Assembly: GCF_001194135.2 (NCBI RefSeq)
Contig: NC_068992.1
Span: 16,694,369-16,758,368, forward strand
Direction: 5' to 3'
Length of the DNA stretch: 64,000 nucleotides
Origin: Octopus bimaculoides
Taxonomy: Eukaryota
A model generated the notes under the pieces. The model saw nothing but the letters and a program-made list of their open reading frames with translations. It ran no database searches and had not been told where the DNA came from. A program made the position numbers and the translations under genes. This document shows positions 16,411 through 61,240 of this stretch, piece by piece; within the stretch, counting starts at the first letter, position 1, and the number at the start of each line of letters is the position of its first letter.

Positions 16411-17789
16411 TTTTTTTTTTGTCATATCAAACGATGACGACTAAAGACAGAAGGGTGGGTCCTTACGTTCTGAGTTCAAATTCTGCCGATGTCAACTTTG
16501 CCTTTCATCCTTTCAGGGTCGATAAATTAAGTACCAGTTGCATACTGGAGTCGATTTAATCGAATGACCAAGAATATCGGGCATTGCGCCTAGAGTAGAA
16601 AATAATAAATTAAATACTATAACGAAAACAATTATTTAAATTGTACTGCCTATTTTACTGTTACCTATCCAATCAATGTGTCAAGTTATTGCGGAGCTTA
16701 ATTATTATTTTTTCCTGAAACGTAAGTTGGGAAAACTGATATTTGTACAAGTTAGGTTGCTTCTATAGAATCCCAAAAGCAAAGCTGTCAAAATATAATA
16801 TTTCTCCATTCTTTAAATTAATTATCTCGGTGATCATAACAACTTACAGAATGTCCACAAAGCGAATCTTGAGAATCATATTTTACAAAAGCACCTGCTT
16901 CAGATTCTAGAATCCTCTAAAGACGTAAAATATCCAATGAATCTGGCACCACAATTACCATTATATATCTATTTGCATAACTCAGCCATGGTAACAGTTA
17001 TTCTATATAATTATTATGCTTGACGTGCACCATAACCTAAAAAAATTAAATAAAATAGCTTTATCTACATCGTGGATTGAATAATCATTTTTCCATTTTC
17101 GTTTGACGTAATTTCATTTCGTTTACGTAGCTTAAACCCTTGCAAACACCTCAATCTACATATTGAATTCTTCTCTAAATTATCTGTTTGACAATTCAAA
17201 AGAAAGCGATAATTGAAAGGTAATTGCTGACTCCCATCGGGCACGATATAATTTACTGGGCATCCAGCACTTTAAGTCATTTCGCATTTCTGCTAAAATC
17301 CATGTTTCTATTCATACTTCAGTGGTTTTATCCTTAGTTGTAACCACGCAAAGTTCTCAATTCCCTGTTCTCTGTCTTCTAAAATTACTATTTTCTTGAC
17401 CTAGACGAACAAAAACAAACATTATTATAATTGATTTAATCAAGATTGAGAGCATAGAGATACAGCACAGAAAAATATATAACTTCTTTTTTAATGTATG
17501 CTTTTACAAATATATTTGAACGATTTAAATCGGGAAAATCGGTTTTCAAAATAAATGTTTGCTTCCATATTCAAATATATTTATATCCAATGTTAGCTCC
17601 TGTTTATCGACAAAGGAAATAGTGAAAACAATATTGAACTCTATAAAATATAAACAACACTGGGAAATTAAGGAGAATAATAAGTTCAATCGTTATAAAT
17701 CTTCCATGAACATATTTTGTACAACACAGTCAAAAGAGAATGGTGAGATGCATTGGCCATCTTCAAGAACGCTGATACTGATGGCAATC

Positions 17790-21364: not shown

Positions 21365-21580
21365 ACGTTCTGCTATAGGCACAAGGCTTGAAATTTTTAG
21401 TGAGGGATTAAGTTGATTATATCGACCACAGTACTCAACTGGTACTTATTTCATCCGACCCCGAAAGATTCGAACGCAAAGTCGACCTCAGCGGGATTGG
21501 AATTCAGAACGTAAAGGCGGACCAAAGACCGCTAAGCATTTTGTCCGGCATGCTAACGATTCTGCGAACTCCCCGCCATC
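21365..21580 (-). mobile_element. Second SINE family, well preserved copy
   Basis: Shares the blocks aagtaccagttg, ggggtcgat, gaggtcgactttgc and gttctgagttcaaat with copies at 955-1190, 14395-14580, 16440-16600, 18890-19020, 35385-35590, 42125-42270, 58965-59180 and 61040-61240. Confidence 0.8.
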
Positions 21581-23889
21581 AAACGATATAGAATTATAAT
21601 CAGACAAGGTATACCGAATAATGGCTTTTAACATACCGTAATTAAATATTGTAATTAGATATTGTCTTGAGTCTTAGGAGAAATAGGAACGGCCATTTCG
21701 TGGCGTGTAAGAGACCGACATTTCAACATCCCCCAGAATAGGGTGGTCGGTCCGTCTCAGAATCACACATTTAAAGCTGAACGGATTGGAGCAACAACGT
21801 GCAATGGAATGATTTGCTCAAGAAAACAACGCACTGACTGTTCCGAGTATCGAAACAGTGATCGAAAGTTCATGAGAACAACACTCTACCCACTAGGCCA
21901 CGAACCATGACAGTTTAAAATAATCAGTGTCTGAAGATGTTATATTGATGGAAGTCATTGCAGGGTGTACCTGCTTGTGCCATAGGGAAGAGTAGAAGCC
22001 GGAACCACATATTGGGGAAGCGAACTCGATCTCCACGCAATTTTGCCATTACTACGTAGAAAAATCTGTTGAAGCTTTCAGTCTCGATAAACAATTTAAT
22101 GTAACGATGTATTTACGTAAAACTTAAGATAAACTTAGATATGTTTCGACCAAAGATTGGTCCAGGCCATGTCTACGTAGGCACAAGTAGGCATGTAAGG
22201 TTCAGAAGCTCTCTTTGCAGTCAAGCAATATGGAGTTCAATCCAATAACGCGGTACAAGTATTTTCTACTATTGCCAATGAATTTGGTCAACGAAAACGA
22301 CGCTGGAGCCAGAAGTATATATATGTATTACAGAAAAGTAAATTTCCAAGGCGGGGTAGCGGTGAAAACAGCGTAGAAAATTGGTGGTGGTGGTTGAGTG
22401 AAACTAGTAAATGATTTCAAATAAAAGATATAAGAGAAATGCAAATAAAATAAATTTGCGACACATAGGTATTGCTTATTTAATTAATGCATGCATTATA
22501 TTTTAAGTGTATAATTTTCCTGTTTTGAGAACAAAACCAATTTAGTGAAAATGCGAAGAATATTTGCTTAGAAATAGAAACGGTATCAAAGGGAATAATG
22601 TTCCATGTAATTTTAATATCAGCATCTTGAATGTGAAGTCAGTTTTATCAAAGACAGCATAAGAAATTTAGTCATTGTGCAGAAACATGACTTTCATAAA
22701 GCGTGCATCGACAAAACAAAGTTAAAATTAAATAACATGTAATACAGCGACAATTGTTAATTGATTAGACAATTTCTATATATATGTATGACGTGTACAA
22801 TGTTTTTTTAAACATGCGAAATAATTGTGTAAAACATTTATAAAATATGCAATGCTACCTGTTCGATGTTACCTATTCAAACATGCTTGGGGTTTATTCA
22901 AAACTGTAAGAAACCCATTCACTGTCTACAACGAGAAATGTTCTACATGACAAAATAGAGTGAATGGCTTTTCTTACGGGTTCGAATATTTGAACTGGTA
23001 ACATTTTTTGCATTTTACACATCACTTCTTATGGTTTCTGTTCCTCATTTATAATGTATATATCATACGACCGTGGCGCCGGTGTGATGGCTTGTGTATA
23101 TCTCATTGATCAGATACTCTTGGGACGCAGTTTCAATCACGTATTTCAATAATTTAAGCTTTACATTATGTTTAGGATGTACGATGCAAGAGGAGGGATA
23201 GCGTATAACGGCGAGTCATAAGCGCTTCCCCTCAGGAGTTGGAAAGAATCCTATCTGAACTTCTACTTCTGCATCTAGTTCAGTTATACCTCCACGGAAT
23301 ACGGCAGTGGCTACAAACTGCTCTCTGATTTCGACTGACCAGCTAAACTACGCGATTGAACTTAATGGCTCCCGCCTGATGGCGAAAATTTCTATTCCAA
23401 AAGAATAAGAAACTTATGACGGTGGAGAGTTCAGAAGAAGCAAGAAAGACAATGGAGTTGAAGATGTGACAGTCAGGAATGTGACATGCCGAAAGACAAA
23501 GTGAGTCAGAGCAACCAAGCCAGTCGTCGTGAGAAAGATTGAGGCCGCACCAAAACAAATGCTAATCATGATCCAGCTAGAAGTAAGCAGGAGTGGAACG
23601 AAAAAGTCTTCACAAATCGGCCATGGGATAGACGGAGGACACCTGCCTGATGATACAAACTTAGAACGGTGCTAAATCTAATATTTTGTCTTAGACGTTT
23701 GAGAGAGACTTGTTTGTTAAAAATGCAGGGCGTTGCTCAGGATGCCGTTGGATCACCAAAATTAATGTTTCAACCTGGCTTGGTCTTCTCAGCGACGATG
23801 AAACTGAGTTAGTATGGGTCTCCGACTGCCAATTAAAGACTAATTCTTTCTATCTACCGGGAATTAAACATACTGCTTTCAGCATTATT

Positions 23890-33069: not shown

Positions 33070-33180
33070 TTATATACATTCGCTAGATGTAGTGCTTTCT
33101 CTTAGGCTTTCGTGTCTACGACGAATTGACTTTTGGTAATTCCTTGAATGATTCAGAATATCCTTGCATTTCGCCACAAC
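33070..33180 (-). CDS. Terminal coding exon of the kinase: VVAKCKDILNHSRNYQKSIRRRHESLRESTTSSECI*
   Basis: Acceptor tattattgcag|, phase 0, open for 36 codons to TAA at 33072-33070. It continues KRPKFKE into a plausible helix I (VVAKCKDIL). There is no diagnostic motif, so the call rests on splice signal and frame. Confidence 0.8.
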   Translation of the reverse strand, partial: VVAKCKDILNHSRNYQKSIRRRHESLRESTTSSECI

Positions 33181-35384: not shown

Positions 35385-35590
35385 TATTCAGCACAGGGCC
35401 TGAAATTTGGGGGCGAAGGATAGTCGATTACATCGACCCCGGTACTCAACTGGTACTTAATTTATCGACCCCGAAAGAATGAAAGGCAAAACCGACCTCG
35501 GCGGAATTTGAACTCAGAACGTAGCGGCAGACGAAATACCAGTAAGCCTTCTGTCCGGCGAGCTAATGATCTTGACAGCTCACCGCCTTT
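35385..35590 (-). mobile_element. Second SINE family copy in a kinase intron
   Basis: Direct similarity to 21365-21580. Confidence 0.8.
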
Positions 35591-37805: not shown

Positions 37806-37934
37806 CTCTTTGAACTTCGGCCGTTTCTGAGGATCCTGATTCCAGCAATACTGGAAAAGCTCTTTATATTCTGGCTGGTAGTCCACAGATTCCTTTAGTC
37901 CTGGTCTAACATTCTTCAATATACTTATTAATAC
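37806..37934 (-). CDS. Protein kinase exon (subdomains X-XI): VLISILKNVRPGLKESVDYQPEYKELFQYCWNQDPQKRPKFKE
   Basis: Acceptor ttttttttattgtag| and donor GAG|gtaaat. 129 nt, phase 0/0. CW..DP.KRP.F is the subdomain XI signature. Confidence 0.95.
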
Positions 37935-51600: not shown

Positions 51601-51788
51601 CTTTTCTTCGTTGTCTATTTCGTAGAAAGGATCTTTGTTGTATAATAACTCCCACATAAATACACCAAATGAATAAACATCAGATGCCGTGGAAAAGCAG
51701 CGATCTTCTTCTCTGGCTCTGGGATTGCGAAGAACTTCCGGCGCAGTCCACCGTACAGAAGGAGCGCATGCGCTGAGATGCTTTTGAC
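51601..51788 (-). CDS. Protein kinase exon (subdomains VIII-IX): (C)QKHLSACAPSVRWTAPEVLRNPRAREEDRCFSTASDVYSFGVFMWELLYNKDPFYEIDNEEK
   Basis: Acceptor ttttcttaaag| and donor AAG|gtatgt. 188 nt = 2 + 62 codons. Contains the RWTAPE and SDVYSFG.FMWEL motifs typical of TK/TKL kinases. Confidence 0.96.
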
Positions 51789-52736
51789 CTTTAAGAAAAC
51801 ACGAACAACAGAAATGAAATATCGTTACAAGTATTCGGCAAATAGAAATTTACACAAACATACAATCGTAGACATACGCACACACATAAACATACATATA
51901 CACATTTATATGCATATGCGTATATATATATTTTGTGCGAGCGTGAATATATATTTATATATAGAGATTTGTACACACACTCACAGACACACATATATAT
52001 ATAAGAATATGGGTATTAATGTGTGTGAGTGTGTGGTGGGGCGAACTGGCACAGTAATGAGAGTGTACAATACAACGCCTAGTGGTATTTGTTTCTACTT
52101 GCTAGAGTCAAATCCTGCTGAATTCAATATTTCCATCCTCTCGGGGACAATAGTGTAATGCCACCCGAAAATATGGTGAACAGAAAATATGGTGAGAAAC
52201 ATTGCTTTATCAGTTTGGCTCTGTATTCTCAGGCAGAAACATCTGTAACGTCAGAGGTTCAGAGGTGTATCGCTCCTTTGTGGTCTTTACTTTGGATCAA
52301 TATTTATTTCGTGCAATTGCTGGGGCAATTGCCACTTTTCCACACACACAGTTTTGCCAAAACCTGCACTGTCACCAATGAGTATTCCACTTTTTCTCCC
52401 CCACCTCTCTCTCTCTGTAGACGTGTGTGTGTATTCGTTTGATCTATGCATCAAACGAAATATTACTGCAAAATAGTAATGTGTTTACCATACTTAATGC
52501 AGGTACATTAGGGAATGCACGTTAACTGTTATATTCGTCCTGAGATACTATCTCCTATAGACGTAGAGTGTCAAACAGCACAAAGGTATATCAGTAACAT
52601 CAGCGAAAGCATGGCATGCCTAATTGCGCGTCTCTGCCTATTTGATGCTGGTCAGTAAATAGTAACCACTAACATCTGCATGTTACGACAAAAACTTCCA
52701 TCGTCACTGATTTAGAAAAACATTGACATTACTTAC

Positions 52737-52806
52737 AAGCACAATCCTCTTTGTTGCACTCTTCCCGCAAAGGCTGTAGGAGTTTTGTTATTCCAAAATC
52801 TGCAAC
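52737..52806 (-). CDS. Protein kinase exon (subdomain VII, DFG, and start of the activation segment): VADFGITKLLQPLREECNKEDCA
   Basis: Acceptor ttgtag|GTT and donor GCTT|gtaagt. 70 nt, phase 0 in and phase 1 out. Contains VADFG. The last T joins the GT of the next exon to give Cys in frame. Confidence 0.93.
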
Positions 52807-53036: not shown

Positions 53037-54769
53037 GCTACTAGAACCATGCTGGATGCTTATTTATTTACTACCAAGAGAGTCCCAATGAAAACTCTGT
53101 AAGGTATGATCATAATATAATACAAAAAATAAATCTAAAAAATAAATGACAAGCCTCGGCAACTTTTAATTTACTTCATTGCTGTGTCTTAAATGTAGAA
53201 TTTAACTATTGAAAAGGTTGCAAGAGGCAACGAAAATTTCAGAAAGATAAATAAGTAAATGAGTGGAAATTTAACAGTGAGTGTGTTAAGTTATAAGGCA
53301 CTAAAAGTGAATGACTCTACCCAGACACAACAGAATATGATTCAGCAGACGAACTCACTTAAAGAATCTTGCAAACCAAATCCCAAAACGAAATGAACGT
53401 AATTGTCCCATCCTCAAACTTAATTAATTTCTCGAAAATAACTTTTTATCCAACGAGGTAAATTCTCATTCCTCCTTCTGTAATTTATTCCTCGCTCTTT
53501 CTTCCGCCCTATCCGTCCTCCTCCTCCCCTCATCTCACTCCCTCTCTGCAAATCACAANNNNNNNNNNNNNNNNNNNNNNNNNNNNNNNNNNNNNNNNNN
53601 NNNNNNNNNNNNNNNNNNNNNNNNNNNNNNNNNNNNNNNNNNNNNNNNNNNNNNNNNNNNNNNNNNNNNNNNNNNNNNNNNNNNNNNNNNNNNNNNNNNN
53701 NNNNNNNNNNNNNNNNNNNNNNNNNNNNNNNNNNNNNNNNNNNNNNNNNNNNNNNNNNNNNNNNNNNNNNNNNNNNNNNNNNNNNNNNNNNNNNNNNNNN
53801 NNNNNNNNNNNNNNNNNNNNNNNNNNNNNNNNNNNNNNNNNNNNNNNNNNNNNNNNNNNNNNNNNNNNNNNNNNNNNNNNNNNNNNNNNNNNNNNNNNNN
53901 NNNNNNNNNNNNNNNNNNNNNNNNNNNNNNNNNNNNNNNNNNNNNNNNNNNNNNNNNNNNNNNNNNNNNNNNNNNNNNNNNNNNNNNNNNNNNNNNNNNN
54001 NNNNNNNNNNNNNNNNNNNNNNNNNNNNNNNNNNNNNNNNNNNNNNNNNNNNNNNNNNNNNNNNNNNNNNNNNNNNNNNNNNNNNNNNNNNNNNNNNNNN
54101 NNNNNNNNNNNNNNNNNNNNNNNNNNNNNNNNNNNNTGGGGATTACTGCAGATGTATACGCCGGGGACATTGTTATTTCATAGCATCCAGTAAATGGATA
54201 CTTTTTAACGAAATATTCTACAAATACTGTCTAAATGTTGTGGCTCGGTGTATATAGGGATTTATAGGAAAACCTTCCCAAAGGAGTGGAGAGGGGAGTT
54301 TCAGAAAATTCACGTGGTTCGACTTTTTTTTACCTCATAACTTTAAGGAAAATGGGTATCTTTTAATGAAAGTTTACACAAATACCCTTCAAACGAAATA
54401 GATTACGATTATAAAGAAATTTGTGGGGAAAATTTCTTTCCTTGGGGTGGAGAGAGGAGTTTCGGTAAGACGGTGTTTCGGATCAGGAAGACCGAATAAG
54501 TTATAACTACTCTGTTCTGACGGGGATTTTCCCCATTTTTTTAAACTTCATCCTTCGAAATGATGGGGTGGGGGCATCTTTGTATGAAAAAAATTTGAAA
54601 CTTTTGTTTTTACAAACCCCCTCCCTCATCATCCCACTCCGTACCTATTCTGGTCATTTTCTTTTTTCACTTCAAAACTATGGAGGTGTCTTTTCCGTAA
54701 AATAATTTTTAAAAATGTTAATATTTTCAGAGGGAAAGGTGAGTGATTTGAGGGAGATTTGGCTGTTGT

Positions 54770-61039: not shown

Positions 61040-61240
61040 TATATTGGTTTCAAATGTTGGCACAACGCCAGCAATTCTGGGGTAATCTACTCCAGTTCTA
61101 AGCTGCTACATATTTTATGGACCTTGAAATGATGGAAAGCAATGTCAGTCTCGATAGAATCTGAACTCAAAATGTAAAGGGGGACGAAATACCGCTAAGC
61201 ATTTTGCCCAAAGTGCTAACGATTTTGCTAGCTCGCCACT
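61040..61240 (-). mobile_element. Second SINE family copy (diverged)
   Basis: ttggtttcaaatgttggcacaacgccagc...aaataccgctaagcattttgcccaaagtgctaacgatt. Confidence 0.7.

Follow-up and report, generated by a model that had tools for sequence, protein, structure and literature searches.

The window considered here, a stretch of 64,000 nucleotides from Octopus bimaculoides (NC_068992.1), consists of AT-rich eukaryotic DNA in which microsatellites and N gaps are numerous, and it holds the last four coding exons of a "drkC-like" protein kinase gene on the minus strand. The activation segment of the encoded kinase, i.e. the stretch between the DFG and APE motifs, is long and carries a cluster of cysteines, and the question raised by the locus is whether this cluster is a real and conserved part of the protein and, if so, what it might do. 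Activation loops are the central switch of kinases; nearly all known switches of this kind are phosphorylation-based, and redox control through a single Cys has been recognised only recently. We report that the cluster is joined from two exons in transcribed RNA, that three of its Cys residues are near-invariant among relatives from three phyla, and that these relatives constitute a family of predicted receptor kinases.

The activation segment and the conservation of its cysteines

In O. bimaculoides the segment from DFG to APE comprises 39 residues with four Cys, one His and no Tyr, arranged as C-x4-C-x-C-x2-H-x3-C; the first cluster Cys lies at DFG+14 and, counted from the Glu of APE, the four Cys occupy positions -24, -19, -17 and -10. 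The initial annotation of this DNA had obtained the same composition by splicing at 52737/51788, with a phase-1 intron inside a Cys codon (T|GT), and both the composition and the junction were confirmed. Specifically, exon A (52806-52737, minus strand) reads VADFGITKLLQPLREECNKEDCA plus a lone T and is followed by gtaagt, and exon B (51788-51601, minus strand) is preceded by an ag acceptor, starts with the bases GT and reads CQKHLSACAPSVRWTAPEVLRNP... in the sequence. The exon A-exon B junction is present in Logan RNA contigs from four independent runs of the same organism with 0 mismatches, and the joint in these contigs skips 948 nucleotides with minus-strand GT..AG ends (CT..AC, cut +2); this establishes both the phase-1 intron and the TGT Cys codon that it splits. 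The features of this part of the gene are listed below, where P0002 is the O. sinensis protein XP_029643365 (579 residues) and P0164 the annotated O. bimaculoides protein (database label 'probable serine/threonine-protein kinase drkC').

Activation segment: 51736..52800, minus strand; from the DFG Asp codon at 52800 to the end of the APE Glu codon at 51736, intron-interrupted, 39 residues (sequence and RNA splice)
Exon A: 52737..52806, minus strand; VADFGITKLLQPLREECNKEDCA and the first base (T) of the Cys3 codon (sequence, RNA contigs, tblastn with P0002 and P0164)
Cys1 codon (exon A): 52758-52756, minus strand (sequence read)
Cys2 codon (exon A): 52743-52741, minus strand (sequence read)
Phase-1 intron: 51789..52736, minus strand; 948 nucleotides, GT..AG, splits the Cys3 codon T|GT (RNA contigs, four runs)
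Exon B: 51601..51788, minus strand; (C)QKHLSACAPSVRWTAPEVLRNPRAREEDRCFSTASDVYSFGVFMWELLYNKDPFYEIDNEEK (sequence, RNA contigs, tblastn)
Cys3 codon completion (exon B): 51788-51787, minus strand (sequence read)
His codon (exon B): 51780-51778, minus strand (sequence read)
Conserved Ser codon (exon B): 51774-51772, minus strand (sequence read)
Cys4 codon (exon B): 51768-51766, minus strand (sequence read)

As controls we used 166 other kinase domains among the best 150 database matches. Their segments mostly comprise 25-33 residues, the range that the initial annotation had given as usual, and 0-1 Cys were found in 156 of them and more than three in none; neither the insert nor the Cys occur in the non-family kinases of the same search. 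At 2% Cys the binomial probability of four Cys in a stretch of 15 residues is ~2e-4, and the decisive argument against chance is conservation across phyla, on which the idea of a chance or lineage-specific Cys-rich insertion was rejected.

Relatives were recovered by an exhaustive HMMER search and a profile search; a word-indexed search with an 86-residue peptide returned one exon fragment. The cephalopod members are from Octopus and Argonauta, and two Logan-assembled relatives share 55-57% identity with the O. sinensis protein. Gastropods are represented by Physella, Biomphalaria, Aplysia, Plakobranchus, Pomacea, Babylonia and Lottia, bivalves by Solemya, pectinids, Mactra, Dreissena, Pinctada, Potamilus and Tegillarca, and annelids by Owenia, Paralvinella and Helobdella. 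The bdelloid rotifer members are a Didymodactylos sequence (P0074) and two similar ones (P0066 and P0093) grouped with it by resemblance. The full-length profile search covered 8000 candidates and missed known members, and a narrow one with the activation segment gave exon-level fragments only; the relatives named here mark at least a part of the taxonomic range of the family. Conservation was counted over 33 mollusc, annelid and rotifer sequences of the family, which include 32 distinct ones, with positions counted back from the APE Glu and residue numbers (C431, C436, C438, C445, C402, H306, S443, H441 and C219) as in P0002:

Cys1, position -24/-25: 33 of 33 by alignment
Cys2, position -19: 32 of 33
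Cys3, position -17: 32 of 33
Cys4, position -10: 26 of 33, including all molluscs; Leu or Phe in annelids and rotifers
His of the octopus segment, position -14: 8 of 33; Ser in Argonauta, Ala in two more distant relatives
Tyr, position -13: 11 of 33
Ser, position -12: 29 of 33
Ser/Thr, position -7: 32 of 33 (Ser in 29, Thr in 3, Met in 1)

The spacing C-x4/5-C-x-C is kept in 32 of the 33 relatives, and as many have a segment of 39-40 residues, approximately 10 longer than usual; the family motif can be written as DFG-x3-(L/I)-x-Q-x-h-R-x2-C-x4/5-C-x-C-x6-(C/L/F)-(P/A)-x-(S/T)-h-R-W-T-A-P-E. At position -9, 27 sequences have Pro and 6 have Ala, and an additional Cys at -18 in 15 of the 33 members gives a vicinal CCC. 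The Gln and Arg of an LQPLR motif ahead of the cluster are invariant in the family, and in an alignment of 18 full-length sequences C431 and C436 are among the 19 invariant columns out of 579. The one exception at Cys2 and Cys3, P0042, lacks a single residue precisely where the intron splits the Cys codon and is probably a gene-model slip rather than a real variant. The model P0026 is also aberrant at the exon A/B junction, where it reads DFG|QRHLSAC and skips the entire cluster; a splice-site misprediction is likely here, not a real variant. The split codon itself recurs: a phase-1 intron at the same position within the Cys3 codon is found in a bivalve-like contig (L001), and seven further genomic exon-B fragments, including annelid-type ones, begin with GT after the acceptor.

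Two residues outside the segment are of interest as candidate partners of the cluster. H306 is invariant (30/30) and lies in an unusual family insert, VAVKRLTLxIHxNQ, between the beta3 Lys and alphaC, and the catalytic-loop C402 (HRDLRC) is kept in 28 of 32. Moreover, the rotifer-type members P0066, P0074 and P0093 have HRN for HRD and hence no catalytic Asp, two of them with DYG, and are probably pseudokinases; all the same they keep LQPLR-x2-C-x4-C-x-C intact. Because the motif persists in these members without the catalytic Asp, its retention suggests a structural and not purely catalytic role. Taken over the whole family, the three Cys in this family-specific insert are under strong purifying selection, and the cluster is a family-defining feature.

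The initial annotation had called for an alignment of the segment with mollusc and other invertebrate proteins and had set, beforehand, the conservation of the Cys as a test that could refute its proposal of a functional Cys/His cluster. Relatives were found, with the three Cys kept across three phyla and the fourth in all molluscs, and the Cys part of the proposal stands. The His part does not: found in so few members, it is an unlikely ligand, and a Cys4His site completed by it was rejected for this non-conservation, with Ser in Argonauta and Ala in two relatives. The Tyr-free segment likewise holds for octopus but not for the family, in view of the Tyr at -13, and is a lineage trait. The suggestion that the cluster takes the place of autophosphorylation was not borne out, given that Ser at -12 in 29 and Tyr at -13 in 11 of the sequences occupy the usual T-loop region.

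Architecture and affinities of the family

All complete members share one layout: a signal peptide, a Cys-containing ectodomain of ~150 residues, one transmembrane (TM) helix, basic residues, a juxtamembrane region and a C-terminal kinase. Since the basic stretch follows the TM helix, the kinase is predicted to lie in the reducing cytosol. At the cytosolic end of the helix C219 is kept in 26/27, a typical position for S-acylation. Pfam recognises the kinase only; no ectodomain family scored above threshold, and P0074 gave a weak ATG27 match. An AlphaFold2 model of the Argonauta ectodomain (predicted local distance difference test, pLDDT, 78) matched by Foldseek at E<=1e-3 only repeats of the cation-independent mannose-6-phosphate/IGF2 receptor (CI-MPR; E 3e-5 to 3e-4, TM-score 0.50-0.55), followed by noise, and because of these matches we regard the ectodomain as MRH/CI-MPR-like. 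The modelled domain shares with these repeats the flattened beta-barrel of the MRH fold; it differs in being a single domain fused to a kinase, and the identity is only 13-18%. Sequence and modelling together thus characterise the family as putative single-pass receptor kinases with an MRH/CI-MPR-like ectodomain and a kinase on the border between the tyrosine kinase (TK) and tyrosine kinase-like (TKL) groups.

P0002 contains the Gly-rich loop, the VAVK Lys, the alphaC Glu, HRD, Asn, DFG and APE (Pfam PK_Tyr_Ser-Thr, 4e-51) and, with HRD kept, is an Arg-Asp (RD) kinase. The initial annotation had read the P+1 motif as the mark of a tyrosine kinase, which we could not uphold: position -7 is Ser/Thr, not the TK-type Pro, WTAPE is also frequent among TKL database matches with HRDLKSxN, and the best solved match is B-RAF. 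Tyrosine kinases have Pro at -7, and Ser/Thr is found there in B-RAF (GSILWMAPE) and PKA (GTPEYLAPE); the family has its Pro at -9 and in some cases at -8. Among solved structures the top single-domain sequence matches are B-RAF (108 bits), RIPK4 and RIPK2, the three spanning 108-102 bits, with a Src/Abl ancestor just behind, and in a Foldseek search with the full model BTK, ITK, Abl and FGFR tie with RIPK2, TNNI3K, TAK1 and Roco4 at E~1e-19. After the family itself, the database matches are plant, oomycete and protist TKLs with HRDLKSxN, and the source labels drkC, SIS8, sty17 and RAF-like are all TKL names. By closest relative the family does not join the TK group; by overall similarity it sides with TKL.

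The catalytic loop, HRDIRCAN in O. sinensis and HRDLRC(A/G/S)N in most members, has Arg at a Src-like position without matching the exact TK motif (HRDLAARN/HRDLRAAN). The Src-type loop is HRDLRAAN, and Ser/Thr kinases have Lys at that position. Molluscs and annelids have Arg (HRDLRCxN) where the TKL-type HRDLKxxN has Lys, and only the rotifer members show this Lys (HRNLK(S/G)SN). With B-RAF, RIPK2 and RIPK4 the family shares Ser at -7, a post-APE insert, NIF(L/I) after the catalytic loop and the C-terminal position of the kinase, whereas those kinases are cytosolic, have HRDLKSxN loops and 30-residue segments and lack the Cys cluster, opposite which the HMMER alignment places a 9-residue gap in B-RAF. 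The likeness to Src-family kinases lies in the HRDLR-x-AN loop and (K/R)WTAPE, and in Foldseek scores of BTK, ITK and Abl that equal the TKL ones; Src, in contrast, has Pro at -7 and an activation-loop Tyr, where the family has Ser/Thr and the octopus protein no Tyr. From its sequence the family is best placed on the TK/TKL border, and its substrate specificity is not callable from sequence.

Automatic annotation has given the members contradictory labels (drkC, drkD, SIS8, sty17, Ror, FGFR-like, ephrin-receptor-like, RAF-like and hypothetical). Our literature searches returned no description of an MRH-domain receptor kinase or of the Cys cluster, and searches of the mollusc kinome literature none of the family; in the oyster kinome four TKLs were assigned to 'unique families' and 28 kinases were ambiguous (PMC4883820). 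The family is undescribed in the literature that we searched, and the comparison brings together proteins that genome pipelines label inconsistently and that combine an MRH-like, putatively lectin-type ectodomain with a kinase, an unusual architecture. Cys-based control of activation segments is known from other kinases, and for the chemistry of the cluster zinc and redox are both hypotheses.

Possible chemistry of the cluster

Our preferred reading, which we hold tentatively and at somewhat less than even confidence, is that the cluster is a Zn-thiolate knuckle. The three conserved thiols (C431, C436 and C438) would chelate one Zn2+, with Cys445 (molluscs only), the catalytic-loop Cys402 or the invariant His306 of the beta3-alphaC insert as fourth ligand and the octopus His outside the site. 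Such a small knuckle would fix the loop between the post-DFG helix and the P+1 loop and would sensitise the kinase to oxidants and to metals that react with thiols, and phosphorylation of the conserved Ser443, or of the adjacent Tyr in other members, could operate alongside it. In the AlphaFold2 model residues 421-450 of the segment are ordered (block pLDDT 89, 78 and 88) and a helix spans 420-429; disordered activation loops usually have much lower pLDDT. Clustered invariant Cys in the reducing cytosol are usually metal ligands, and we infer that a Zn knuckle would explain the invariance of the Cys, the ordered prediction and the retention in pseudokinases. Metal bound by Cys is known from the C1 domains of PKC and RAF and from the rubredoxin domain of mycobacterial PknG, where oxidation or loss changes kinase activity; those are separate domains, however, and the putative site of the family is inside the activation segment itself.

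Several observations weigh against a Zn knuckle. No four-ligand set is invariant within the segment, the candidates being C445 (26/33), C402 (28/32) and H306 (30/30). The exchange of Cys445 for Leu or Phe in annelids and rotifers is what one would expect of a hydrophobic residue in the protein interior rather than of a Zn ligand; we take Cys445 to align with the P+1-pocket Leu of PKA and B-RAF, and it may simply be buried. The spacing C-x4-C-x-C is not that of a classical Zn finger, the beta3-alphaC region with His306 is modelled with only moderate confidence (pLDDT 66), and a literature search for a Zn site inside the activation loop of a eukaryotic protein kinase found no precedent. Metal binding and the tetrahedral thiolate geometry of such a site are putative.

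Foremost among the alternatives is a metal-free redox switch, to our minds unlikely, in which the segment would be locked or released by sulfenic acids or by reversible disulfides (C436-C438, C431-C436, or with C402/C445 as partner) that form when conditions turn oxidative. Redox control through activation-segment Cys is established in several kinases: oxidation or disulfide formation regulates catalysis through the T-loop+2 Cys of Aurora A, PKA, AKT and other AGC/CAMK kinases and in BRSK1/2 (10.1101/571844; PMC11964447), AKT1 forms an intraloop disulfide (PMC3597556), and the TKL-type kinase LRRK2 is controlled by the redox state of a CC motif (C2024/C2025) within its post-DYG inhibitory helix (PMC10991482). 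The vicinal CCC of many members (the 15 with Cys at -18) would suit such a switch, and the predicted helix 420-429 resembles the LRRK2 inhibitory helix, which takes up the first ~10 residues after DYG. The known redox Cys are nevertheless elsewhere. T-loop+2 is a single Cys at -9, specific to the AGC and CAMK groups, and the family, with its kinase on the TK/TKL border, has Pro or Ala at this PKA Cys199-equivalent position, the nearest Cys being at -10. The two adjacent Cys of LRRK2 are at DYG+5/+6 inside the helix and unique to LRRK2 among human kinases, whereas DFG+5/+6 is (L/I)(L/I/T) in the family, whose three to five Cys (DFG+14 to +21) come after the helix, in an insert of 10 residues shared by three phyla. 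Known regulatory Cys are, moreover, often kept in subsets of a family only, and near-invariance that extends to rotifer pseudokinases fits a structural role better.

A structural role need not involve chemistry, and the Cys could be small buried packing residues, or part of a surface for a partner, in a plain structural or docking insert, the kinase being switched in the usual manner when a ligand drives dimerisation and Ser443 or the Tyr beside it becomes phosphorylated. Ordinary phospho-acceptors are indeed available at -12 and -13, the kinase is of the RD type, and Cys445, whose place is taken by Leu or Phe in other phyla, acts like a hydrophobic side chain; but packing Cys normally exchange with Ala, Ser or Val, and three near-invariant Cys with no such swaps in 32 of 33 sequences over deep divergence are unusual for packing, so we consider this reading unlikely. 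The version put forward in the initial annotation, a tyrosine kinase whose Cys4-His site has taken over from activation-loop autophosphorylation, appears very unlikely. The HRD(I/L)RCAN loop does resemble the Src-type HRDLRAAN and the octopus segment does lack Tyr, yet the His is found in only 8 of 33, Ser/Thr instead of Pro stands at position -7, B-RAF and RIPK lead the sequence matches among solved structures, and the conserved Ser443 together with a Tyr in one third of the members speaks against lost phospho-control. Most improbable of all is S-acylation, by which palmitoylated C-x-C or CCC would tether the activation loop to the inner leaflet: the protein is membrane-anchored, it has the conserved juxtamembrane C219, and CCC runs are typical acylation targets, but the cluster is separated from the TM helix by ~210 residues and belongs to a folded, confidently predicted domain, the middle Cys of CCC is variable, and we know of no acylated activation loop.

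To return to the Zn-thiolate knuckle, a bolder extension, which we regard as doubtful, is that a site of the three Cys and His306 (or Cys402) would tie the activation loop to alphaC or to the catalytic loop and so replace the activation-loop phosphate. The outcome would be a receptor kinase controlled by metal and by oxidants, with a pseudokinase scaffold in the rotifers, in a glycan-sensing class with lectin ectodomain that is spiralian-specific in the sense of the relatives sampled. If true, three near-invariant Cys, kept from rotifers to octopus despite lost catalysis, would represent a different way of setting the shape of the loop, and the family would constitute a previously unrecognised class of glycan-sensing receptor kinases gated by metal and oxidants.

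Gene structure and other features of the window

Downstream of exon B the gene continues with two exons, both located through loose ends of RNA contigs, the first after an intron of 13.7 kb. Exon C reads ...CWNQDPQKRPKFKE, the terminus of the kinase domain, and the last coding exon encodes a 36-residue tail and the stop codon. The list also gives the N gap just upstream of exon A.

Exon C, end of the kinase domain: 37806..37934, minus strand; VLISILKNVRPGLKESVDYQPEYKELFQYCWNQDPQKRPKFKE (RNA contigs, tblastn)
Last coding exon: 33070..33180, minus strand; VVAKCKDILNHSRNYQKSIRRRHESLRESTTSSECI and stop codon (tblastn)
N gap: 53559..54136, no strand; 578 nucleotides, candidate site of a missing catalytic-loop exon

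The spliced C-terminal peptide comprises 165 residues, not 167 as initially annotated, and is 100% identical to the C-terminus of P0164 and 94% identical to P0002. By tblastn the part of the kinase within the window is DFG onwards only. Six-frame motif scans of the window for exons with HRD, the Gly-loop or VAIK found none, and the N-lobe and catalytic-loop exons are absent from the window sequence. RNA contigs run upstream of exon A and have catalytic-loop sequence ahead of VADFG; this RNA-derived upstream exon sequence was searched for in the window and not found. P0164 jumps from ...WPLRARI to VADFG, without the 37 catalytic-loop residues present in O. sinensis. The RNA shows that the missing exon exists and is transcribed, and we attribute the broken O. 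bimaculoides gene model to a gap in the assembly. The exon is possibly in the gap at 53559-54136, or it may just as well be located beyond 64000.

Both Octopus models (P0002 and P0164) are also without the first ~40 residues of the ectodomain (C..V.GG.I(D/N)L..L...G.PRF), including one conserved Cys, which are present in Argonauta (P0156) and other molluscs; a 5' exon was probably missed in both. The 948-nucleotide intron between exons A and B carries TG/CA and AT microsatellites. The RNA contigs that pile up at 51940-52030 in this intron, on a low-complexity stretch rich in TG/CA and TA, are unrelated ones with the microsatellite in common and do not indicate an extra exon.

Finally, a stop-broken remnant of a Tc1/mariner-type transposase (63652-63299, minus strand; Pfam HTH_Tnp_Tc3_2, E 1e-11) is located in what is expected to be an intron of the kinase gene. 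An interspersed repeat is present in four copies of 100-170 nucleotides with 71-79% identity (21400-21750, 35422-35587 and 61085-61237 on the plus strand and 16463-16561 on the minus strand), two of which are inside introns of the kinase gene.

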